Below are positions 1 to 13,092 of a DNA stretch of 64,000 nt, piece after piece (within the stretch, counting starts at the first letter, position 1; the number at the start of each line of letters is the position of its first letter). This stretch comes from Saccostrea echinata. Lineage: Eukaryota. The position numbers were made by a program, and so were the translations under genes. The DNA lies in the NCBI RefSeq assembly GCF_033153115.1, contig NW_026889779.1:26722001-26786000 (forward strand). The letters are read 5' to 3'. Below the pieces are notes generated by a model. It was not told where the DNA came from and did no database searches. It saw nothing but the letters and a program-made list of their open reading frames with translations.

Positions 1-492
1 TCTGCCGCTGAGATCATTCGGCAAACCTCGGCTGATTCCGTCACCTTTGTGATATGTAGATGAGGTACATGTAGGTTGCACAACAGTATTAAATTTTGCT
101 ATATATTCTTACCAAAAATGCGCAACTTTGAGTAGGTTGTATTAATTGAAAACAACTTTTGAGAAGTTTCCTTCTCAGATCTTGTAAAACAATTCTTTAT
201 AAAGATTTTAATGCCAACAAATACATAGCCATCCAGCAAGGCACGCAAGTTTGTTTCGGTCGAAGTCGAGCAGGTGCTTGAAAATCAAGTCCAGGACCTA
301 ATCACTCCCAACTCAAATACAGTATATAGAAAAATCAGCAAGCCCTAAATTATAATGAATCTAGTCAATACAGGAAGTTTACATATTGTTTTTCATCTCA
401 TAAAAAAAATCAGCTGCAGTCTCATATTAAAATGCCCGAATCGGAACGGAAGATTCAGGAATTATTTTGCGTCAGCCATGATTTGACGTGGA

Positions 493-550
493 TCCCCACT
501 GAGAACGGCTGATAACAAGCAGCACCATCACTTGACGATTTGCAGAGCAA
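493..550 (+). repeat. Split direct repeat A1 (58 bp)
   Basis: tccccactgagaacggctgataacaagcagcaccatcacttgacgatttgcagagcaa is identical to 12365-12422. Confidence 0.95.
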
Positions 551-629
551 CAGATAAGAAGTGTATAGCCAGTGTTAAGAAGAAAAGACAAACAAGGATA
601 GGTAATATATTAATTTTAAATTAACAAAA

Positions 630-1294
630 GCAGCTGAGGGCTATTTAGCAATTCCTGCCGCTCAGGGCAGAAGTTAATGCATGACATTTTAAGCCGCTGA
701 GGGCTATACATTTTTCCTGTCGCTGAGGACAGAAGTTAATGCATGAAATTTTAAGCTGCTAAGGGCTATACATTTTTTCCTGCCGCTGAGAGCAGAAATT
801 AATGCATGAAATTTTAAGCCGCTGAGGGCTATACATTTTTCCTGTCGCTGATGACAGAAGTTAATGCATGAAACTTTAAGCCGCTGAGGGCTATACATTT
901 TTCCTGTCGCTGATGACAGAAGTTAATGCATGAAACTTTAAGCCGCTGAGGGCTATACATTTTTCCTGCCGCTGAGAGCAGAAGTTAATGCATGAAATTT
1001 TAAGCCGCTGAGGGCTATACATTTTTTTCCTGCCGCTGAGGGCAGATGTTATTGCATGAAATTAAAAGCTGTTAAGGGCAAAAGAAATGGTTCCTTAAGG
1101 CTGTACATAATTATTCCCGCCGTTGATAGCAGAAGTAAAATGCAAGCTATAAATAACCACTAGGGTGTGTTGGAACGCATGGAAGTTTAGAAGCCGCTGA
1201 GGGCCGATGTTAATGTTTGAAATTGAAAAACCGCTGAAGATTATTTATAACTTAATTTAGTACTAGTTTGTAAAGTCAAGCTGCTAAGGGCTGT
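630..1294. repeat. Tandem minisatellite (~59-60 bp unit) in the 5' region of the YR retrotransposon
   Basis: About 7 well-conserved and several degenerate copies of gccgctgagggctatacatttttcctgYcgctgaNNNcagaagttaatgcatgaaattttaa. A degenerate copy resumes at ~6634-6700, after the Kolobok insertion. Confidence 0.92.
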
Positions 1295-1298
1295 TTAA

Positions 1299-4200
1299 GG
1301 GTTTGGTTTTGTGTGCAGACAAGTGAGACTCACTAAAAATAAAAACCTTAATATCTCAAAAATTAAGCCTTGCTAACACTTGAAAACTGGTCCATGTCAT
1401 CTTCATAATGAAAACAATCTCTGGGTATATGCAGCTTAATTGACACTTGCAGTAGTTTGCAGCTATGAAGTACACAATACACCTGCAGGACTGCGCAGCC
1501 ACAGGTTTTAGTAGTGCACCAAAAAATATGAAATAGTTAAACCAATTAAGTGGCTACAACTATTTGTGAAGAACCCTTGTTTTAAATGTAAACTCACTAC
1601 AATAGGTACAATTCTTTAAATGCATACATGTTAGTTCAACAAGAAAATGTTAGCCATGAAAGTAGTCCCAACCACATGGCAATGTGTTAAAAATAGAATT
1701 AAAGAGACTCACTCTTGATCTAAAAATAGCACATTATATGAAAGCCCAGATATATCTAAAGTATTACTCTATGGTCTGTACAAAACACAGCTAAATTATT
1801 GTTAGAAAAATAATTTTCTCCTTAAGAAATATGCCAAAGAAGATGTTAAAAATTTGCAGGTGGAATGAAAGTGTGCAATTTAAATAAGAGGCCTGACCCA
1901 CCATGTTCACTTGAGTCACCTTGGTGTTCTTCAGATTTCTAAGACATTCTTATCCCCCTTAATTCTCATAAAAACTTTGAGTCAATATTGTGGCCCCACC
2001 CTGGGGTCATAAAGCCATGTATAATCCAAAACTGATTCCACAACATGAGGATATTTCATTATCAGTATGGCTAACACGGCTTATGTGTTTTCTGAAGTTT
2101 TTTTTTTCACATGTATACATGCATTTACCAATTTATATATATAATCTTATCTCAGATTTATTTGAAGAAGAAAAAAAGTGGGAAAAAATACAAATAGGAA
2201 ATATTGTAATATTATTACCAGCATAATATTAGGTCTGGACCATGATTTAGACCAACTTGATCTTCACTACTTGAGGATGCTTGCATTAAATTATGAGTAA
2301 ATCATTACCTTGTTGTTCATTAAAGGATGATTTTTTCCTATCTATTCCCATGTCAAACTTTGACACTCCTATTTTAGGGTTTAATTTTTATGGAAGACAG
2401 ATGGAGAGACTCTAGGATCAGAAAAGTTCAATATAGACTCTGTTCAGATGAGCTAAAATGTAAAATGTCTTTGATTATTGTAAAAAAAGTCACCAAGAAG
2501 AACAAAAGAAAAGGATGATAAATGAACTTTTTTTATTCTTATCACTTCCAGGATATATTATTTCTTTTAACGTGCATATGCAAGTTTGACTACTTTTTAG
2601 AAAGTTTCTTTAAAGATATAAGGTATAATTTTATAAATAAGCTTCAATTCTAACAATATAACTATAACTCTAAGATATTTGAGACCTGTGTTCTAAGCAT
2701 GTGTTTCACAAGAGTGACTTTAAAACATTTTTTGCATTTAATGCACTAAACAATAAATTAGATAAAACATTATTAAAATATCTTGTATCAAGATCCCAAA
2801 ATGTTCCTCATTGTAAACTTGTGGAAAGTTCAAATATGTACTTTTGTTTATGGTCATCATATGTTTTTTTCAGTGATGTTTGGAAAGTTCAATGTATTTG
2901 TACATACAACCATGAAATCAGAAATATTAACTTTCTCAAGTCATATCGTATGAAACTAAATCACAGTCTTCATATGTTGCTGATATTTTCTCCAACACTG
3001 CTTTCCAAAAGATCAAACCAACATGGACCAAAACCACTATCATTTGAATGATCTCCTTAACTTTGAAATCTGTAAAATATTAAATATAAATAATTTATAA
3101 CATACCACTAAAAAACCAATACTGTTGATCACTCTCAAAGAAGGAACTTGAATTGCAAGTTAAATCTTTACATCATGACTAAGTAAAAAGCATGCAAAGA
3201 TAGACATGTAAATTTCAGGGTCAAAAACTACACATCCCTCAACAATGATGGTCACGTAAATGTTGGTCAACACTGATTGTTGCATTGAATAGACATGTAT
3301 CTCATTTTAATTTACAATTGTGTAGATCAGAGTAGTTTAATCCATATAAAGATAAATGAGTTTAATCTGTTTATAAAGAGGTCAACCATAAATAAGATCA
3401 AGGTAAACCCAAGTGATGGTCATGTCATCCTGCCTTGGGAAGTAGATGAGACAAGCATATAAGATCATAATTAAATAAAGCAAACAAGTATCGGTACAAA
3501 ATCTGAAGGTTAAATGACAAGGTAAGGATTTGATGGCAGAATTTTAAAAACCTGATATGATGATATGTGTGTTAGTAAGCTACAAGAAGATGATCAGAAA
3601 CAGTTCCTTCCAAAAGATATTGAAGTTTTCAATTATTTAAAAATAACCTCTGATGCGACTTCTCTTTTTTCAGTCACTGTTTACCTAACATTTGTTTTTT
3701 ATCATTAAAGTCAACTGCAATATAAACAATTATTTTTATATCTATTTGGTTTATAATGTGACATCACAGTCATAAGGTTTGATTATTCATGATTACGATA
3801 CTTTATTCGCTCAAGCAGCCACGGGTAGGAGAGAGCTGTAGGCGGACTCCAACCATGGCTTGAGACAATGTAATGGACACATACACAACATTCATTTAAA
3901 CAAGATCTTTCTTTTCATCCAACCGCATATATATTTCTCATCATAAAAATTGTGCATTCTTTCATTTATTACCCATAGAATAACATCTGAATCCAATCAT
4001 ACAAAATGAAAATGACTAGTCAGCTCACGGTGATTATAACACCTACCTTATACCCTTATACACATGTCTATTAGATTAACAGAATCATTTCATTGCGATA
4101 TAAAACTCACCTTACAGGGGAGGTTCTTGGGAGAGCTCCAAAACAGGTATCACATGAAATGCAGAAATTGACAGTCCAGAGAAAATATCTGAGCAGTGTT

Positions 4201-6629
4201 CTTTTTTGTGAAACAAGGCATTCTGTAAACATGGTAAACATAATTATAATAAATTTTAGGAAAAAAGTTCCAAAACAATTCTTTTAAATCTAGATATTAA
4301 TATTAAACTTTGTTGAAGGTGTCAGTATTTTAACTGAATGGTATTTATTTCCTGAAACTGGCCCGATAAAACTTTTTTCTCAGACTTTATAAGAATTTTA
4401 ATAGAGTTTTGCTTCAATCTCGAGAACATCAATAAATGTGAATTTCAATTTGAATTTGATTATTGTTTGTTATTTTCATATTTCATTGAAAGTCACTTTT
4501 TTTCTTTAAGCATTTTAACCTTAATGTGTCAAACTATCGGATTTCTTGATACTTTTTATTGGTACCATATCAGGATAGTCAGGATAGAAATAACAAGGTT
4601 TATCTGTACCATTAAAATGCAGGTCCTCAAAAAAAATTATAATAATAACCTTTGAGATAAAGTGGTGGCTACATGTACATTCATTATTTTTTTTTTTTAT
4701 TTTTATAGAAAAGTATTTATTGATCAATACCAAGATTTATCCCCCCCCCCCTCCTCAGCACCTTATCTCTTCCTTACAAGTGCAACCAACAACCTATGTC
4801 TGATTGAGCATATGAAAAACTTTCATAAAATGACCATTTAATAAAAAATAAATATGCTTGGTAGCATTTGATTCAGCATGCTCAATGATAACTTAAGATC
4901 AGGTAAGACTCCCTTATTGCTCCCTATTTGATGAAATCAATGCAGTTGCAGAAAATCAATTTTTCAATCTTATCCATTTCAACTAGAAAATAATACTTTA
5001 TGCAATTTTCTTATAAAAAAAATAATTATTTTTCAATTTTGCTGCACTCTTCATTTGATAAACAATTTACATATCAAGCAAAAACCAAATTAAGTTGACA
5101 TCCTTGAAAATTTTTATCATTTGATTTATACTTTTCCCCATGAAAACTTATATGTATACTGCACTAATCTGCAAATTAGAATGACCAAGTCCAAAATGAT
5201 GGTTTGTATACATAGTACAAACTTATGTGAATATTATTTATATAAATGTAAATAATTAATAATTTATATATATATTGCACCCCTTTTACAAAAAGTAAAA
5301 CAAAAAAGCAATAAAATTTGAATATCAAAATATTCACAAAATTGATTTACAAATAACACAACTGATTTACCATATATGTGTACTACGTAGAGCCACTTCA
5401 CTTAGCTGTCAATGGACTTAACTTGGTGTGCCTGAGGCTCAATGAAGGATCTTACACAAAAAATCGCTCATTCATGAAAACAAAATTTAGTTATTTACTC
5501 TACTCATAATATTTGAAACCCTGTTTTTGAATGAACTATATTTTGATACAATGACGAATACTTTTAGTATTTTGAAACATAGTAACATTTATTAGAGTAA
5601 CCTTAAATATTACCCGCTACCAAATTGTGGTCTGCAAGAAACACGTGGAAATTCTCGGATCCTTCGTATAACGTTTAACCTTTTTAAAATTGATGTGCAT
5701 CAGATCGCAGGCGTTGTCATACTCAAAATGTATTACTGATACTGGGAGTTATATTATATATCTGAGAGAAGGCTCATAATTCACAATAAAGACAAAAAAT
5801 CTACCTACCAGCTCCTACTTTCAGTTTAGCCGAATATCGCATGACAGACAGATATAAACTATGCAGAGTGAATATAGTTCTTAATTTTCGTGCAATATTT
5901 TTTCAATATTATATGACATTGTCCTACATCTGTAGGATTAATATGCTTATTTAATAAAAAGTAATTCATAACCTTACCTGCAAAAGAAATAACAGACGTT
6001 AACTTCAGTCGGAACTGCTAAAACTGGGCGCGTATTAATTTATCCGGTGCATTGTAAAATCAAAGAGGGAGTATTCTCTGATATGGCGTAAACATCGATG
6101 TTACTCTTATGATAAATAATATTAAAACATTTCGATCGATACATTCTAATAGCTGGAGATGTTTTACGAGATGTCTCTCTAATTGCTTTGTGTAATTGGG
6201 GTACTAGAGACACCAGATTACAGAAATAGTCAGTACACTGTAGGTTTCAATACCGGAATGGCAGCCCATAGATTTCGCATGGCGGATATGCCTAGTTGAT
6301 GAAAAACAGACAGATATGGAAAAAGTACGCACAGAATTGCTAGGAACGAAACAAATAGTTGTACCCATGACGTTCAACTATCTGCACATATACAACAAAT
6401 GTCGTGTTATTGTTTTGTTAGACCTGTAGCTGTGCAGTCCTGCAAGTGTAATATGCACATTATTGCTGCAAGACACTGCAAGTGACAACCAAACTGCATA
6501 CATGTCAAGACAGCTTTCACATGGAAGATGTCATAGGTCAGTTTTCAAGAGTAAGCAAGAAGTATTTATTAAGATATAGAGATTTTTATTTCATACGAGT
6601 TTCACTTGGATGAACACAAAACCAAACCC
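1299..6629. mobile_element. Kolobok-type non-autonomous DNA transposon (TTAA target, GG...CC termini, ~210-bp imperfect TIRs)
   Basis: TTAA(1295-1298)|gggtttggttttgtgt ... acacaaaaccaaaccc|TTAA(6630-6633). 1299-~1510 aligns as the reverse complement of ~6418-6629. Purine termini fit Kolobok rather than piggyBac. No transposase ORF is seen. Confidence 0.82.
1883..2458 (+). mobile_element. Degenerate Helentron-type non-autonomous element (HINE-like)
   Basis: Starts aataagaggcc...cacttgag and ends gatcagaaaagttca...tcagatgagctaaaa, the same type of termini as the 17562-20826 and 43918-44532 copies. Confidence 0.6.
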
Positions 6630-6903
6630 TTAATGTAAATTAAAAAATTTTCCTGCCACTAAATGAGTTAAAAATTTCAAAGCCAATGAGGGTCGTCTAT
6701 AGCTATTGAATGAAATCTTAAGTATAGGAGAGTTGTTAAGAGCAGAGATAAATATATTGTTAATAAATTATGGCTACCTGAGTAATGATGCGAAAAGCCG
6801 AATTATAATATAAAAAATTCATAGGCATAACATGTTTTAGTCAACATATAACACAGCATTGGTAGCTATTTACAAATGTATATGCGTTCTACATAGTTTG
6901 TAT

Positions 6904-6950
<47 letters not shown>

Positions 6951-7168
6951 AGTACGTTCAGGCTTTAAGATTTAACTGTCTAGTATATCAAGGTAAAATT
7001 TAGTAATCATGGTAAAAAAATTTCTTATTACTAGATGCCCCCTCCGACCGTCTTGAAGCGGAGACACTCTCTGCGGGGGAAAGACTTCCCCGTCATCAAA
7101 GAGATGAGAGGGCTGGAACAGCCGGTGAAACAGTTTGCACGATATAAAATAAACCACAGCTAGAGGAG

Positions 7169-7461
7169 ATGGACAAGGATGAAGTGATTAGCGCCTTTAG
7201 AGAACTGACCGGAAAATCTGAAAAAGAGTGCATGCAGATGGCTGGTAAAGAGATGACAGAACAAAACCTTAAGACGCTTCTTCATCTAGTAATTCTGAGG
7301 GCGAATGAGTTCGGCCAACCAGCTGGCCAAGAATTAAGCACCGAGAACAAGGTATACAGTTAACTTGTACTGATAATTAATGTAATTATTGCTAGCATCA
7401 CCACCATGGGATATAATAATCAAATTACTCATTCTATGAAACTATTATTTAACTATATCAG

Positions 7462-7498
<37 letters not shown>

Positions 7499-8198
7499 AA
7501 CTTTATTAACGGATGGTGTTATAATGAATGATTTCCACACTTTGTGTATACAGGAGAGTGAGCCGGAAGAGCCACCTGCAAAGAAAGTAAAGCCGACCCC
7601 GAGTGTTGGGAAGAGGCTACAAGAACTTGAGAAAAGTCAGAGAAACGAAGACGACAAAGAAATAGAAAATGTAAAGAAAAGGTGAGGAGTTTAGCACTTC
7701 AAAGCAACCCCAGTATCCCGCTTCTCCTTGTTACTTTGGATGAGCTCGCTAGAATAACTCGGCGGAAGGGCCATGATGAGGCCTCCGTGTTTGATGAGCT
7801 TTCCCGACAAGCTAATCTGAATCAAGATAAAATTGATGTTCCAAACTTTTGTTTGAGTGTTCTCTGGGGCAAGGCTTCTGATGTAGTAGGTAAAGCATTG
7901 TCAAAAGCTGTCAAAATAAAACCCGAAACGAAATCTACAGAAACGGAGAAGATAACTTCTACTGAAACTCAATCTCCACTGTTGAATCTATACGGGCAAC
8001 CAAACTACATGGGGTATATTCCACCACAATACAATTTTGTACCTGGTACACATGCAGTGGGAACCCGGGTATCGGCGATACCAGCGCGCTCCATACAGGC
8101 AATCAAGGACTGGCTGCCTTTTCTGCGGGGCAAATGACCATTACATTCGTGAATGTGCAAAAATGAAAGCAGCAAGAGGAAAAATGAATTCTCAATGA
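7169..8198 (+). pseudogene. gag: Gag-like ORF1 of the YR retrotransposon (putative exons 7169-7351 and 7554-8198; frameshifts near 7680 and ~8050)
   Basis: Exon 2 starts ESEPEEPPAKKVK (NLS-like). A C-terminal zinc knuckle CLFCGANDHYIREC (CX2CX4HX4C) lies at ~8115-8156, with the stop at 8196-8198. The intervening 7352-7553 is AT/poly-A rich with GT...CAG ends. Confidence 0.75.
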
Positions 8199-8479
8199 CT
8201 TTTTTAACAATGTGAAAGAACTGATTTTAGTCAAGTTGAACCAGTTTCTCAGATTTGAATTGTACATTTAACGGTCATTTCTTTAGATATGATATGATAT
8301 GAATATTTAATTAGATTATTTGTCTTAAATTGACTTAAAAACATGTAGTGTTTTTCAATCTGAAAGAAAATAGAACTGATTAAATATTGGCATGGAATGA
8401 GTGTTATCGGTGTATACCTGATATCCGGGGACACTGAAGCCCTAGTGAGTACTCTCACGTGGATTGATGGTTTGGGATC

Positions 8480-10756
8480 ATGTTTTCCCATGTTATCCTA
8501 GTAGATGATGCTCAATCCGAAATAAGATTATTAAGAATAATAAATATCTCGTGTTTGCAGGAATTTAACATTTACGTTCCTGGCTGGGAGAAAAGTGACG
8601 AATTTAACCCAGAGGAAATTGTTTTACGTAAGAGAGAGCATCCTACCTGGACAACACTGGGGGAATACGGTTCCAAACCAACAATCCATGCAGATGGACA
8701 AGTATTTATTGATTCCTATAGCGACTTACTGCATTTGTCTGTAAGAAACCCTGATCGATTCGTTTCGGGTGAAATTCACAAACACAAAGATGAATGGTTG
8801 CGTATAACTCAAAGAAATTCAGACAACATGTCAACTACAATTCAAAATTGGGTCAGTAATGGCATTGACGTTAGGTCCTTCCTGCGTCCGTTCAAGGGAA
8901 ACTTCAAAGGGCAATCGTATGATAACAGACTTCCACCAAAACAGTATTTTCAAAATTCTAAGAATTGCAAAAACTTTGTTCATTTTATTAGAAAAGAAAT
9001 AAGTGAGAGACTAGTCAATGGTTCGCTGAGATTATGGGGAAGGGTGGGAACAAGCTGTCTCCCTAAGATTATCATGCCTTTGACAGTGGAACCAAATAAG
9101 CCACGACTATGTCATGATGAACGTTTTTTGAACCTGTGGACAAAGGATTTACCCTTTACGTTAGATACACTTAAAGACGTCCATAGACTTGTTGGAAAAC
9201 ATGCTTACATGGTGTGTTGCGATGAAAAATCGGGATACGATCATATTAAGCTAACCAGAGAATCAGAAAAATACTTTGGAATTCAGTTTGGGGAATGGGT
9301 CTTCACATACACGACTCTACCATTTGGCTGGAAAGCCTCTCCTTATAAATATCAAATGATTGGGATGCAAATCACATCATACCTTCGAGAGAAGGGTCTT
9401 CATATGGTCCAATACATTGATGACAGGCTCGCAGTGTGTCAGAAATATGACAAAATTGATCAATCAGAACTTAAGGAACAAGCTTGTCCGTTACAAATGG
9501 TTAAACTTATCGTGACCGAATTAACAGCCTTAGGATATACACTGGCTATCAAAAAGTGTCAGCTAATTCCAACTACAGTAGTCCGATACTTAGGTTTTCT
9601 AGTTGACTCTTCTAAACAGGCCTACTTACTTCCATTGGATAAAAAGGAAGCATTCATCAGGATACGAGAGGATATCGTGCAGACAAATGAAGTTGATGTT
9701 AAAACTCTTTAACGATTTGCCGGAAAATGTATATCCATGGCAATCGTTATACCAGGTGCCAAACTATTTACAAGAGAGATAAATTTTGCAATATCACTGT
9801 GTATGAAGAATTGTAAACAAACAACCATTTCTCGTGAGCTGCGACAAGAGATCGAACATTGGAGGTTTTTAGACGACTGGGAAGGCTTCGCGCCATGGAG
9901 ACAAGGAAAGCATCTTCAGATGTCACTGTCAACGGACGCATCCTCTTTCCGCTACGGGATTTCCCTAATGTCAGGCCAAGACAAGGGTCTATATTTTGGA
10001 GACTATTGGCCAAGCGAGGATGATCGACCGATTCATCTTAAAGAAGCATCAGCTGTCGACATTGCTCTTCAGTCCTTGGCACCAAAAATCAAGGATCACA
10101 GATTAGACATTCATGTTGACAACACCGCAGTCTTGCATGCTTGGGAAAATCAAAGGTCTCGTGACCGACAATTGGCTGACATCATGAAAAATATATTCCA
10201 GACAGTTTGGAAATTGAATATCGACTTAAGATTACACTACGTGCCATCAGCAGAAAATGTTGCAGACGCTCCCTCTAGGACTATTTCTTACACAGATTGC
10301 ATGTTACATCCCAAAACATGGCAGAGTGTTGATGCTATGTTCGGACCACATACGGTGGACTTGATGGCGACGGATACGAATGTTATGATGTCCAACTCTG
10401 GAGTACCACTGAAACATTTTACGAAAAACCCAACTCCGCAATCAGCGGGTGTTAATGTATTTGCGCAAGATTTGTCAAGTGAGAAGCGTCCCTACGTGTT
10501 TCCTCCATTTCACCTAGTATTCCCTGTATTGTGTCTCCTTAAAGAACAAAAAGTAACACAGTGCACAATTATTGTGCCAATAATATACCCGCGACCAATT
10601 TGGTGGCTGCTTTTAAGTGCTCACTGTGTAAAATTTTTCACTTTAGGTAAACAAGGTAATAAATCTGTATTACTTATCCCATCAAAGAAAGGGTTCATTT
10701 CCGATAAAATGGGACTGAAATGGGAACTTAGAGCATGTATAGTGGACTTTAGCTGA
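8480..10756 (+). pseudogene. pol: Pol of the YR retrotransposon: reverse transcriptase - RNase H - DNA N6-adenine methyltransferase-like domain; one in-frame premature stop at 9710-9712
   Basis: RT motifs DEKSGYDH, LPFGW and YIDD. RNase H motifs TDAS, IHLKE, DNT and NVADAPSR. MT motifs DLMAT and YVFPPF. ORFs 8480-9712 and 9737-10756 share a frame (TL*RFAGKCISM, probably CAA>TAA). Confidence 0.93.
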
Positions 10757-10790
10757 AATTATAATAAAATTACGGACTCTTATCTTGTAG

Positions 10791-11990
10791 GTGGAAAATA
10801 ATAAAGTTGGCCTTCCTGCTATTGACGAAAGGTTGAGCCAGCTTGAAAAGAATGAAGACAATAAGAAAGCTACAAAGAAGATGAAAAGCTTGGAGAAAAG
10901 GGTACGACTTTTCTTATCCCAGTTACCACACTCTCCGGACTTAACAAGTATGACGCCACACGACGTATGCAGATTTATGGTATGGAGTGATAGATTCGGG
11001 AAGACGCAGGTACACGAAATCTCGTGTCCACACTTGGGTAAATTAGGTTTATTTGAATGCCCATGTCCTACTAGGCTCGCGGCAGGAACTATTCATAATA
11101 TGATGCAACAGATATCTGAAATCTTGTATACTCATGGAGGAACTCGATCATGGGATGTTCATACTAAGTCTGGAAATCCCTGCTTGTCCCCTGAAGTAAA
11201 AAACTATGTAAAACTTTGTAAAGAAGAACAGGCAAGGTCCCATGTGTTACCTAAACAAGCAAAACCAATATTTTTAGGAAAGATAAAGAAATTGACATTG
11301 TTTATTGATAGAGAATTTGCTCGCCCTGACCTTTCTTTAAGGGAAAAGTTCGTCTTAATCAGAGATCAAGCGATATTCAAGATCCAGTTCTTTGCGGGAG
11401 ATAGAATCGGCGATGATTGCAATATTTTGTCGCAGGAAGTTAAAAAATTACAAGATAACTCCGGTTTTGTTTTCAACCACACCTACGGTAAGACGTTACG
11501 TGGAGATGGAAAGTCAAACACTTTTGTCGTTAAAAGATCTCAAGATAAGTCAATCTGTCCTGTTGAAGGGCTAGAGAATTACTACCTGGTCAAAACAAAA
11601 TAAGGTGGATCTGAGTCTAGGATATCTCTTTAGACCCGTATCAGAGTCAGGACGAGTACTGGATCAACAGCTGGGATATTCAGCGATTTATGAACGACTA
11701 AGGTATTACCTGGTATCTTTGGGAAACCCCACACAGTCTACGGGGCGGTTTTGCAGTAACCATGGCGATTTCAGGCACTGCGGCATCTCCCCAGGAACTC
11801 ATGAAGCCATGTCGGATGGTCGAGTGAACGATCGGCTTATTACTATAGCAGGACAAAAACCTTGACAAATGCTAGCACATTAGCAAGCAATATTGCCAAC
11901 TTGTCGGCAGACACAGACGAAATTGAAGGATTTTATAGGACACATGGAGATTTTTCCTCCTTTAATCCAGCCTTTAACTCAACAAATTAA
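10791..11990 (+). pseudogene. Tyrosine recombinase (YR) of the retrotransposon, frameshifted near 11590, 11720 and 11805
   Basis: Catalytic motifs read across frames: FFAGDR, GKT, ETPHSLRGG, HVGW, AYYYSR. Stop TAA at 11988-11990, with AATAAA at ~12045. Confidence 0.9.
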
Positions 11991-12287
11991 AGAATAAGAT
12001 GTTGTCAACCTCATATGCTAATATTTTATATATACTAGTTATTCAATAAAATCATCATTTAAATAACCTTATTACTAAATTACTTTGTATATAATCAGGT
12101 CAATACTATTGTGTAACATCCTGTGTATTTAAATCTCATGACTTGGCATATAAAAGCATGAGGGAAAAAAAATGTTTTGTTGTTATCTAATTTGAGTGAG
12201 TATTGGGTAGAGAAATTTAACTAGAAATTTAACTGGATGTACCCCTTTTACAATTATAATTAGGGCTATAAAACATACTCATATCTA

Positions 12288-12422
12288 AGTCCAAATGAAA
12301 TTACCCGATACTCTAACAGAAGTGCGTGTTGTTTCAGATAGTTATTAGTGGGGATATGTTAGGTTCCCCACTGAGAACGGCTGATAACAAGCAGCACCAT
12401 CACTTGACGATTTGCAGAGCAA
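12288..12422 (+). repeat. Internal B1-A2 split direct repeat junction
   Basis: B1 (12288-12362) matches 13093-13167 and A2 (12365-12422) matches 493-550. Confidence 0.95.
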
Positions 12423-13092
12423 TATTACCAAGGTGAAAGCCAGAGTGATGTGTATTGGTGTATTAACCGCTAATATAACACGTGGTTTTTAAATAAGATA
12501 TAACTTAAGTGAAACCGGGGTGGAAATGAAACAACAAAAATCCATTCCTGGTTAAGTGGGTTTTATTGTAGTGTTGGTGTGATTTACCATGACATTCATT
12601 CATTCAATGACCCTGATTGTAGAAAATCACTTGATCCAAAAATATTTTCAATTTAAGAACATTAAAATCAACTCAAAGAAACTTCAAAGCTCTAAGAACA
12701 CCCTCACACCCATCTGTACGCTTGGGCATGAAAACCAGTAATATTGAACAATAAAAATTCCCTCCTAAAAATCATGTGACCAGTCCAGAATGACCACTTA
12801 CTGAAAAGATCTATAAATAGTAATACAGCTACAGGTAAATCCTAAAGAAGGATAACTAGTACTTTACCTGTCTGACTTAATAAATAATAGAATAACAAAA
12901 CACATACCTTTATAGTTTGAATGAAATGAAATAAATCTTTATTAACACATTTCAATTTAAAACTCTGAAAATAATTAATATTTTAGGTCAAACAAAATTC
13001 CTGAAAATAATATTTTAAAACATATAAAATTTCTCTCCATTACTTAAGCTCTATTAAAAAAAATAAAAAAAAATAACAACACACACTTCCCT

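Follow-up and report, generated by a model that had tools for sequence, protein, structure and literature searches.

Tyrosine-recombinase (YR) retrotransposons of the DIRS order include a PAT-like group (PAT, kangaroo, TOC3), which is defined by split direct repeats (A1 ... B1-A2 ... B2) and by the gene order gag, reverse transcriptase (RT)-RNase H plus a methyltransferase (MT)-like region, and YR (PMC3266345, PMC13465315), and in which introns have been reported in kangaroo-1 transcripts (cited in PMC1636488); classic PAT and DIRS descriptions rely on separate or overlapping ORFs. DIRS1-like elements such as Dictyostelium DIRS-1 carry RT, RNase H, an MT-like region and a YR with an ALOG-type N-terminus, but have inverted terminal repeats, an internal complementary region and overlapping ORFs (PMC3266345, PMC13465315), whereas the Ngaro group combines split direct repeats with the absence of an MT-like region and, often, an extra hydrolase ORF after YR. 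In retroviruses (env and accessory mRNAs) and in LTR retrotransposons such as Drosophila copia, plant Ty1/copia and BARE, whose gag RNAs are spliced (PMC5580714, PMC3735527), one primary transcript serves both as unspliced genome and as precursor of subgenomic mRNAs, and splicing rather than frameshifting sets protein ratios; spumavirus Pol is likewise made from a spliced mRNA. Finally, Penelope-like elements (Athena) keep spliceosomal introns through retrotransposition (Arkhipova et al. 2003, cited in PMC1636488), although these are not known to organize the expression of three proteins from a shared leader, and their enzymology (GIY-YIG endonuclease) also differs.

A 64,000-nt stretch of the genome of the oyster Saccostrea echinata (RefSeq GCF_033153115.1, contig NW_026889779.1, positions 26,722,001 to 26,786,000, forward strand; hereafter the window) contains, at 490-13167, a dead, decayed copy of such an element, which is assigned to the PAT-like group on the basis of its repeat layout and gene order. 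The same repeat layout is found in a second copy in this genome (C54); no LTRs were found, and no integrase domain appeared in a Pfam scan of the ORFs. Homologs of Pol carry PF00078 and PF17917, while about 150-200 conserved residues that follow RNase H and include a ..YVFPPF.. motif matched no Pfam model and are called MT-like only by analogy with DIRS elements. Unlike DIRS1-like elements, the terminal repeats are direct, only short A/T-rich inverted matches were detected, and the ORFs are separated by spacers of 360 and 34 nt; unlike Ngaro elements, Pol extends well beyond RNase H and no ORF follows YR before B1.

Features of the element, in window coordinates (a slash marks a splice junction; C38, C54 and C20 are other copies in this genome; X1 and X2 are public sequencing runs)
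Position	Strand	Feature	Basis
490-550	+	A1, 5' member of the split direct repeat (equals A2 at 12362-12422)	A1 region of the C54 copy (L002 233-293) matches both 490-550 and 12362-12422; A1/A2 and B1/B2 also present in C54
569-601	+	3' end of non-coding exon E0 (5'UTR); donor D0 at 601/602 (GGATAG/GTAATA)	X2 contig (record 3) carries 99 unmatched letters before the ATG region, the last 30 of which map to about 569-598 and to the same place in C54 and C38
602-7034	+	5'UTR intron I0, with a 62-bp tandem array (652-1063) and, in this copy only, a 5.3-kb insertion without ORFs (1299-6629); acceptor ..ttattactAG/ATG at 7034/7035	Acceptor directly before the ATG conserved in all three lineages; intron absent from X2 contig (record 3)
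7035-7351	+	Coding exon E1 (about 106 codons when intact), predicted folded N-terminal Gag domain; frame-broken in this copy; donor D1 at 7351/7352	46-55% amino-acid identity between lineages; 296 database relatives; AlphaFold2 pLDDT 88, pTM 0.81; dN 0.41-0.48 with dS saturated between lineages
7352-7553	+	Intron I1 (202 nt, GT..AG, AT-rich, with a 33-nt A run)	X1 contig (record 1) skips exactly these 202 nt; boundaries conserved in three lineages, interior not alignable
7554-7681	+	Exon E2 (43 codons when intact; this copy lacks 1 nt after 7672), ending at alternative donor D2, AAG/GTGAGG, at 7681/7682	D2 conserved at the nucleotide level in all lineages; RefSeq models join ..NVKEK directly to pol or YR sequence; invariant Val in an alignment of ten Gag models
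7682-8198	+	Gag body with a CCHC knuckle, read when D2 is not used and inside the intron of the pol and YR mRNAs; frame broken in this copy by a 5-nt deletion near 8066	zf-CCHC match (weak); X1 contig reads through D2 to 8217
8416-8479	+	Conserved non-coding block in the gag-pol spacer with a small hairpin (GTGAG-n4-CTCAC)	Aligns between lineages while flanking spacer does not; 7-pair hairpin with one compensatory pair; no Rfam match
8561-8701	+	Pol acceptor (8560/8561) and 47-codon mini-exon E3, ending at donor D3, CAA/GTATTT (8701/8702)	Acceptor conserved, with a stop immediately upstream in the other lineages; models P0124 and P0122 contain exactly this segment between E2 and YR; D3 absent from the second lineage and C20; Lineus Pol and YR models diverge at the homologous point
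8561-10756	+	Pol (RT, RNase H, MT-like region); broken in this copy by an in-frame TAA at 9710-9712	RVT_1, E 2.4e-17; RT_RNaseH weak; intact 731-codon pol in C54
10791-11990	+	YR acceptor (10790/10791) and tyrosine recombinase with an ALOG-type N-terminal domain; frameshifted after about 11600 in this copy	ALOG, E 8.8e-14; acceptor conserved in three lineages; full-length homologs carry PF04852 and PF00589
12288-12422	+	B1 (12288-12362) directly followed by A2 (12362-12422), internal junction of the split direct repeats	Repeat comparison in the window and C54
13093-13167	+	B2, 3' terminal repeat (99% identical to B1); about 530 bp of extra sequence (about 12510-13038) separates A2 from B2 in this copy but not in C54	Repeat comparison in the window and C54

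The initial annotation described a 61-codon, ATG-initiated leader exon (7169-7351) whose single donor is followed by three acceptors, each in phase 0 and placed where Gag-, Pol- or YR-like sequence begins, and all of these sequence features are indeed present. The ORF 7169-7351 ends AAG/GTATAC and runs into a stop four codons later (..ENK VYS, then stop), and pyrimidine-rich acceptors are found at 7553/7554 (..tgtgtatacAG/GAG), 8560/8561 (..cgtgtttgcAG/GAA) and 10790/10791 (..cttatcttgtAG/GTG). All joins are in phase 0, and gag (stop 8196-8198), pol (stop 10754-10756) and YR do not overlap but are separated by AT-rich spacers. The 5' end of the leader exon is, however, different from that proposed: the conserved ORF starts at ATG 7035 (MPPPTVLKRRHSLRGKD..), and the ATG at 7169 is an internal Met that resembles a start only because this copy has frame-breaking indels between about 7079 and 7155.

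That these sites are more than chance is indicated by their conservation, which had been set as a test beforehand. D1 and the gag, pol and YR acceptors occur at homologous positions and in the same phase in three lineages of the family in this genome (the window, C54 and C38 copies; the C33, C1, C3, C28 and C25 copies; and the C20 copy), which are only 65-70% identical in DNA and whose intervening spacers differ in length and cannot be aligned. Protein similarity begins exactly at each AG; moreover, in the second lineage an in-frame TAG or TAA sits directly at or before the gag and pol acceptors, and in C20 an in-frame TAG forms the pol acceptor AG. Conversely, the ATGs at 8480 and 10881, from which pol and YR might otherwise initiate, are not conserved.

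Removal of two introns is supported by contigs from public runs that are only guessed, not recorded, to be RNA; a DNA run holding processed copies would look the same. One contig (1111 nt, about 96% identical) joins 7351 to 7554 and, relative to the window, has indels at the places where the gag frame of this copy is broken; a second joins E0 to the ATG at 7035. The gag intron and a 5'UTR intron are therefore real if the source is RNA. No read or contig covered 8218-10872, and the joins to pol and YR are accordingly not directly observed in RNA.

These joins rest instead on conservation and on RefSeq gene models, one of which lies on the C38 sister copy while others come from about ten mollusc and nemertean species. 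P0124 (S. echinata LOC133200311, on C38) and P0122 (S. cucullata, 601 aa) read E1/E2(..NVKEK)/EFNIYVP..HADGQ/VENN..YR; P0031, P0015 and P0039 fuse E1 and E2 to a full Pol; and P0153, P0162, P0152, P0131 and P0147 fuse E1 and E2 directly to YR. Of 240 Pol and YR hits, 18 carry the leader, all of them annotated gene models in bivalve or nemertean genomes. Matched pairs of models (Magallana Gag and YR; Lineus Pol and YR) share an identical N-terminus and diverge exactly at a Val (GTN) codon, although the donor used by gene models in the Magallana family lies four codons upstream of the invariant Val.

The interpretation put forward in the initial annotation, in which one donor at 7351/7352 would splice alternatively to 7554, 8561 and 10791 so that only exon 1 is shared, is thus only partly supported. 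The analysis supports that the element has spliceosomal-type introns, that Gag itself needs splicing, that the pol and YR ORFs lack conserved start codons and begin exactly at conserved phase-0 acceptors, and that one N-terminal Gag-derived module is, in gene models, fused in frame to Gag, Pol and YR. However, the leader comprises E1 plus E2 rather than 61 codons, I1 looks constitutive, and the alternative 5' splice site is D2, with E3 also included in the YR mRNA of this family. All leader-Pol and leader-YR models inspected include E2 and leave it at or near D2, none shows a direct 7351>8561 or 7351>10791 join, and the only probable transcript contig joins 7351 to 7554. Such direct joins are phase-compatible and cannot be excluded as minor forms, but the single-donor scheme is considered very unlikely.

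It is also conceivable that only the 5'UTR and gag introns are real, with Pol and YR translated from unspliced or partly spliced RNA by internal initiation, reinitiation or their own ATGs, and that the leader fusions are artefacts of predictors that chain neighboring ORFs. In favor of this view, RefSeq models mix RNA, protein and ab initio evidence, are not independent between species, and demonstrably invent introns to step over damage (a 345-bp insertion in the C38 YR and, in another model, a 41-nt insertion in C54); the C38 model uses the pol acceptor although that copy has AT instead of AG there, and the model on C54 (P0001) starts Pol at its own ATG, the equivalent of 8480. Against it, besides the unconserved ATGs and the stops immediately upstream of the acceptors in the other lineages, AG/G acceptors and phase 0 are kept across lineages and, judging from ORF read-through signatures, across many other families; models in about ten species, some with several numbered isoforms, agree on the junctions; and a predictor artefact would not explain a conserved GT at the exact divergence points. 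This alternative is therefore regarded as unlikely.

A profile search with E1 found 296 cluster representatives; among the 150 best that were examined, most are 100-200 aa ORFs consisting of E1 plus a short read-through tail. In 21 of 47 short-tailed representatives the tail begins with VS, which is what a phase-0 GTRAGY donor encodes, 5-15 residues after the GQPxGQ motif, compared to about 2-3 expected by chance (estimated from the dipeptide frequency). ORF-called Pol proteins show pyrimidine-tract residues followed by Q (..F.Q/ = ..TTYCAG/) upstream of the PxWE motif in 14 of 20 cases by pattern match, against 31% in control windows. In the S. echinata genome all 38 E1 matches lie in open frames of 166 aa or less, and no continuous gag ORF is seen. 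E1 is under long-term purifying selection and is confidently predicted to fold on its own. That the spliced units are domesticated host genes, as might be suggested by their annotation as ordinary multi-exon "uncharacterized protein" genes and by the fact that host ALOG proteins are thought to derive from the N-terminal domain of such recombinases, appears highly improbable, because the copies are multiple and dispersed, decay independently, are bounded by split direct repeats and carry full RT, RNase H and YR coding capacity, with at least 38 E1 matches belonging to several lineages in this one genome.

In summary, the explanation that best fits these data, held with reasonable though not full confidence, is that the family is expressed from one promoter by nested alternative splicing. 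In this view, all mRNAs remove I0 and I1 to yield a common N-terminal module of about 149 residues, consisting of the E1 domain (about 100 residues) and a Lys/Glu-rich helix encoded by E2. If D2 is ignored, translation continues into the Gag body; if D2 is spliced to 8561, the module is fused in frame to Pol; and if the weak donor D3 is then also used and spliced to 10791, the module plus 47 Pol residues is fused to the recombinase, whereas in other families E2 joins the YR exon directly. The fully unspliced RNA, whose first ORF stops four codons into I1, would be the template for reverse transcription, which is how the introns are inherited; its existence is inferred from their inheritance in all copies. 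While the sites and their conservation, and the absence of I0 and I1 from contigs of probable RNA origin, are established by the analysis, the E2>pol and E3>YR joins are supported by gene models only, D3 being not conserved in the second lineage or in C20. That the shared module brings Pol and YR to Gag assemblies, a co-targeting role already suggested in the initial annotation, remains an inference, a self-association test of E1 having given no verdict, as does the idea that splice-site strength sets the Gag:Pol:YR ratio in place of frameshifting. More tentatively, it is possible, though less likely than not, that a whole clade of lophotrochozoan PAT-like retrotransposons (bivalves, gastropods, nemerteans) uses an ancient, retrovirus-like splicing program, in which a folded N-terminal Gag domain plus a helix is grafted by alternative 5' splice-site choice onto all three proteins, which would then co-assemble on the unspliced RNA, with splice-site strength replacing frameshifting and with the conserved structured block in the gag-pol spacer controlling retention or export of the intron-containing genome.

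Compared to the PAT and DIRS systems described in the papers that could be searched, in which no account was found of a leader shared by Gag, Pol and YR, of an alternative donor inside gag, or of ORFs that lack start codons and begin at acceptors, what would be new here is the expression scheme, in which spacer-separated ORFs are joined by splicing. Compared to retroviral and LTR-retrotransposon splicing, splicing here would fuse an N-terminal Gag domain in frame to both enzymes, Gag itself needs a splice, the alternative donor lies inside the gag coding sequence, and the element encodes a recombinase rather than an integrase. ORF-based transposon pipelines will score such elements as broken, because pol and YR have no ATG and gag is split, and genome annotations list their products as unrelated "uncharacterized proteins". 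How DIRS-order elements express their proteins is poorly understood outside Dictyostelium; a splicing-based scheme with a shared Gag module would be a third solution to the Gag:Pol stoichiometry problem, beside frameshifting or readthrough and separate promoters, and would also be an independent evolution of retrovirus-like complex splicing in an element that uses a recombinase.

Comparison of the region by BLAST with two sister copies in the same genome (C54 and C38, 96% and 94% identical, respectively), together with self-comparisons, shows that it is part of a longer element whose repeats adopt the split-direct layout A1 ... B1-A2 ... B2. Pfam detects RVT_1 (2.4e-17), a weak RNase H, a weak CCHC knuckle at the end of gag and an ALOG-type domain (8.8e-14) at the start of the last ORF, homologues of which carry the phage-integrase domain PF00589; the best Pol hit is LOC133172302 of Saccostrea echinata. 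The split direct repeats, a long conserved region after RNase H and the order gag, pol, YR together fit the PAT-like group of the DIRS order, and do not fit DIRS1-like elements (inverted repeats, overlapping ORFs) or Ngaro (no MT-like region), according to the criteria of PMC3266345 and PMC13465315. The copy itself is dead, its reading frames being interrupted at several points in gag, pol and YR. A 5.3-kb stretch found only in this copy, in which the longest ORF encodes 116 aa (none of 120 aa or more), interrupts its 5′UTR intron, and additional sequence between A2 and B2 increases the B1-to-B2 spacing to 805 nt, against 268 nt in C54. An Rfam scan of 6500-13300 returned no ribozyme or known RNA family, with only one chance-level hit.

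Coordinates of the features of the element and of the lesions in this copy
Feature	Position	Description
Element	about 490-13167	Full extent
A1	490-550	Repeated as A2
E0	about 569-601	Non-coding exon just after A1; donor 601/602
Tandem array	652-1063	62-bp units, 6.6 copies, 91% matches; inside the 5′UTR intron
Insertion	1299-6629	5.3 kb, this copy only
A run	6907-6948	Pure A run inside intron I0
E1 start	7035	ATG of the coding exon, directly preceded by a conserved acceptor
E1 N-terminus	7035-7080	Among the most conserved parts of the module
Indels	about 7079-7155	Frame-breaking
Intron I1	7351>7554	202 nt, GT..AG
A run	7465-7497	Pure A run inside intron I1
1-nt lesion	after 7672	One nucleotide missing
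Donor D2	7681/7682	AAG/GTGAGG; ends the 43-codon exon 2
5-nt lesion	near 8066	Five nucleotides missing
Spacer block	8416-8479	Conserved non-coding block in the gag-pol spacer
ATG	8480	Not conserved
E2>pol join	7681>8561	Inferred from gene models
In-frame TAA	9710-9712	
E3>YR join	8701>10791	Inferred from gene models
ATG	10881	Not conserved
Discontinuity	11038-11635	Skipped in one contig; non-canonical TA..GA ends
YR frameshift	after about 11600	
B1	12288-12362	Repeated as B2
A2	12362-12422	Repeat of A1
Extra sequence	about 12510-13038	About 530 bp between A2 and B2; absent from C54
B2	13093-13167	Repeat of B1

The initial annotation had described an exon of 61 codons followed by three phase-0 acceptors leading into gag, pol and YR, and everything it described is present in the sequence. 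To test these features against chance, three lineages of the family from this genome were aligned: the window, C54 and C38 copies; a second lineage (copies C33, C1, C3, C28 and C25) at 65-70% DNA identity; and the C20 copy, which is more distant still. At the end of exon 1 the coding similarity stops at a GT in all three (AAG/GTATAC, TCG/GTAAAT and TTG/GTAAGT) and resumes exactly after a pyrimidine tract plus AG, whereas the interior cannot be aligned and varies in length; the pol and YR acceptors behave in the same way, and all sites are phase 0 in all lineages. In the second lineage an in-frame TAG forms the gag acceptor itself and a TAA sits one codon before the pol acceptor, and in C20 a TAG forms the pol acceptor AG, so that those ORFs cannot be entered from upstream by translation. 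The ATGs at 8480 and 10881, whose conservation had been named beforehand as a possible refutation, are not conserved.

The interpretation placed on these sites, a single donor serving three acceptors, was supported only in part and needs correction in three respects. First, the 61-codon leader is the C-terminal part of an exon, E1, of about 106 codons, whose initial peptide MPPP(T/A)VLK(R/K)RHSLRGKD.. is conserved in every lineage and in distant species; the extreme N-terminus, ..VLK(K/R)RHSL(K/R)GK.., is among the most conserved parts of the module from oysters to a nemertean, and looks like a basic patch with an RRxS-type site. Second, the conserved acceptor directly before the ATG, together with 99 letters that one contig carries upstream of it and that map just after A1, indicates a non-coding exon, E0, and a 5′UTR intron, I0. 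The latter holds the 62-bp tandem array, also seen in the C54 copy (371-909 of its genomic stretch, L002), each unit of which contains GC-rich inverted segments (..CTGCCGCTGAGGGCAG..). Third, the donor D2, conserved at the nucleotide level in all three lineages, ends a second coding exon, E2. Long pure A runs (33-42 nt) lie inside I0 and I1 of this family and similar runs lie in the gag-pol spacer of second-lineage copies (genomic stretches L032, L035 and L036), recurring in intronic parts of different lineages. The gag-pol spacer also includes a non-coding block that is conserved between lineages although the surrounding spacer cannot be aligned; it contains a small hairpin, GTGAG-n4-CTCAC, which with a single compensatory pair, found in C20, is not established as a structure, and has no Rfam match. 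It is a candidate cis element for splicing control or for export of unspliced RNA.

Evidence from sequencing runs is confined to two small runs holding part of the stretch, whose RNA status is a guess. When aligned to 7000-12000, one contig (X1 record 1) covers 7052-7349 and then 7552-8217, skipping the 202 nt of I1, and reads through D2 into the gag body, with indels relative to the window at the places where the gag frame of this copy is broken. A second contig (X2 record 3) shows the E0>E1 join. A third (X1 record 2) joins 11038 to 11635, skipping 596 nt, and is probably a deletion derivative or an assembly artefact rather than a splice. No contig covered 8218-10872, so that the pol and YR junctions were not observed in these data.

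Searches with Pol and YR, carried out exon by exon and never with joined sequences, returned many annotated proteins, of which eighteen gene models begin with the leader. The two most relevant, P0124 (S. echinata LOC133200311, on the C38 sister copy) and P0122 (S. cucullata, 601 aa, of the same family), both read E1 / E2 ending ..NVKEK / EFNIYVP..HADGQ / VENN.. and then YR, corresponding in window coordinates to the joins 7351>7554, 7681>8561 and 8701>10791. Models P0031 (S. cucullata), P0015 (Argopecten) and P0039 (Lineus, a nemertean) fuse E1+E2 to a complete Pol, and models from Magallana/Crassostrea, a second S. cucullata family and Lineus fuse E1+E2 directly to YR. These models are not pure RNA evidence and are not independent between species; moreover, RefSeq models on the sister copies remove as introns a 345-bp insertion in the YR gene of C38 (8776-9120 of stretch L040) and a 41-nt insertion in that of C54 (about 7860-7900 of stretch L039), the C38 model uses the pol acceptor although that copy reads AT rather than AG there, and P0001, on the C54 copy, starts Pol at its own ATG. 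P0001 and P0031 also splice to the YR acceptor from a donor inside the MT-like region, which is not conserved in the second lineage and was set aside as doubtful; like the two bypassed insertions, this looks like an annotation repair and calls for caution. Two matched pairs are especially telling: a Magallana Gag model and a YR model are identical for 161 residues and then part, and a Lineus Pol model and a YR model are identical for 196 residues and then part, the unspliced reading having in both pairs a Val (GTN) at the point of divergence, as expected for an alternative 5′ splice site.

A profile of E1 searched against 1.84 billion cluster representatives found 296 relatives. Of the 150 best, most are ORFs of 100-200 aa in which E1 occupies residues 1 to about 103 and is followed by a short tail, and in 21 of 47 short-tailed cases the tail starts with VS 5-15 residues after the GQPxGQ motif, against the 2-3 or so that we estimate by chance; VS is what a phase-0 GTRAGY donor encodes when it is read through. 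The long hits are RefSeq or other gene models, from Lineus, Argopecten, Pecten, two Mytilus species, Patella and Saccostrea, that join E1+E2 to Gag, to Pol or to YR. ORF-called Pol proteins that happen to start upstream show pyrimidine-tract residues followed by Gln before the PxWE motif in 14 of 20 cases by pattern match, against 31% in control windows, which is the read-through signature of ..TTYCAG/. In the S. echinata genome all 38 E1 matches lie in open frames of 166 aa or less, no copy with a continuous gag ORF being seen among the scored matches. In an alignment of ten Gag models, the Val at the D2 position is one of only seven invariant columns, although the Magallana pair uses a Val four codons upstream.

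The shared module is conserved in E1 at 46-55% identity between lineages, with dN of 0.41-0.48 and saturated dS, precluding a ratio between lineages; within the second lineage dN/dS is 0.6-0.8, as expected for dead copies. With an alignment of 59 sequences, E1 is predicted to fold (pLDDT 88, pTM 0.81) into a small domain of four helices and a short sheet, whereas E2 is a low-confidence long helix and E3, the pol segment retained between E2 and YR, is predicted to be disordered. A Pfam scan of exon 1, exon 2 and the gag body assigned no family, and no known fold matched the E1 model convincingly: Foldseek against the PDB found nothing at E <= 0.001, a wide VIA-align search gave a best Z of 4.5, with several SAP/LEM-like helix-loop-helix hits at Z 3-4, below any meaningful level, and the ESM Atlas gave no lead. 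A complex prediction with two copies of E1 returned a score of 0.05, which is not evidence either way.

Alternative splicing is known for retroviruses and for copia and BARE elements (PMC5580714, PMC3735527), and introns are known in Penelope-like elements and have been reported in kangaroo-1 transcripts (PMC1636488). What differs here is a Gag leader that appears to be spliced onto both Pol and YR: literature searches found no paper describing such a leader in DIRS-order elements, or splicing-based expression of DIRS, PAT or Ngaro elements, although they did not extend to the main reviews (Poulter & Goodwin 2005; Poulter & Butler 2015) or the kangaroo paper and prior description cannot be excluded.

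In summary, the splice sites and their conservation are read directly from the sequence and removal of I0 and I1 is seen in contigs presumed to derive from RNA, I1 being very likely real, whereas the joins of the leader to Pol and YR rest on gene models and the function of the shared module is inferred; that it brings Pol and YR to Gag assemblies is suggested by analogy with Gag-Pol fusions and is about as likely as not. A strict scheme of one donor and three acceptors, as first proposed, is unlikely. We favor instead, with reasonable though not full confidence, a mechanism in which one transcript starts near A1, I0 and I1 are removed from all mRNAs and D2 is the switch: left unused it would give Gag, and spliced to 8561 it would give leader-Pol. 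Use of the weak donor that ends E3 (D3), together with the 10791 acceptor, would give leader-E3-YR, while in other families E2 would join YR directly, and the unspliced RNA, whose first ORF ends four codons into I1, would be the replication template.
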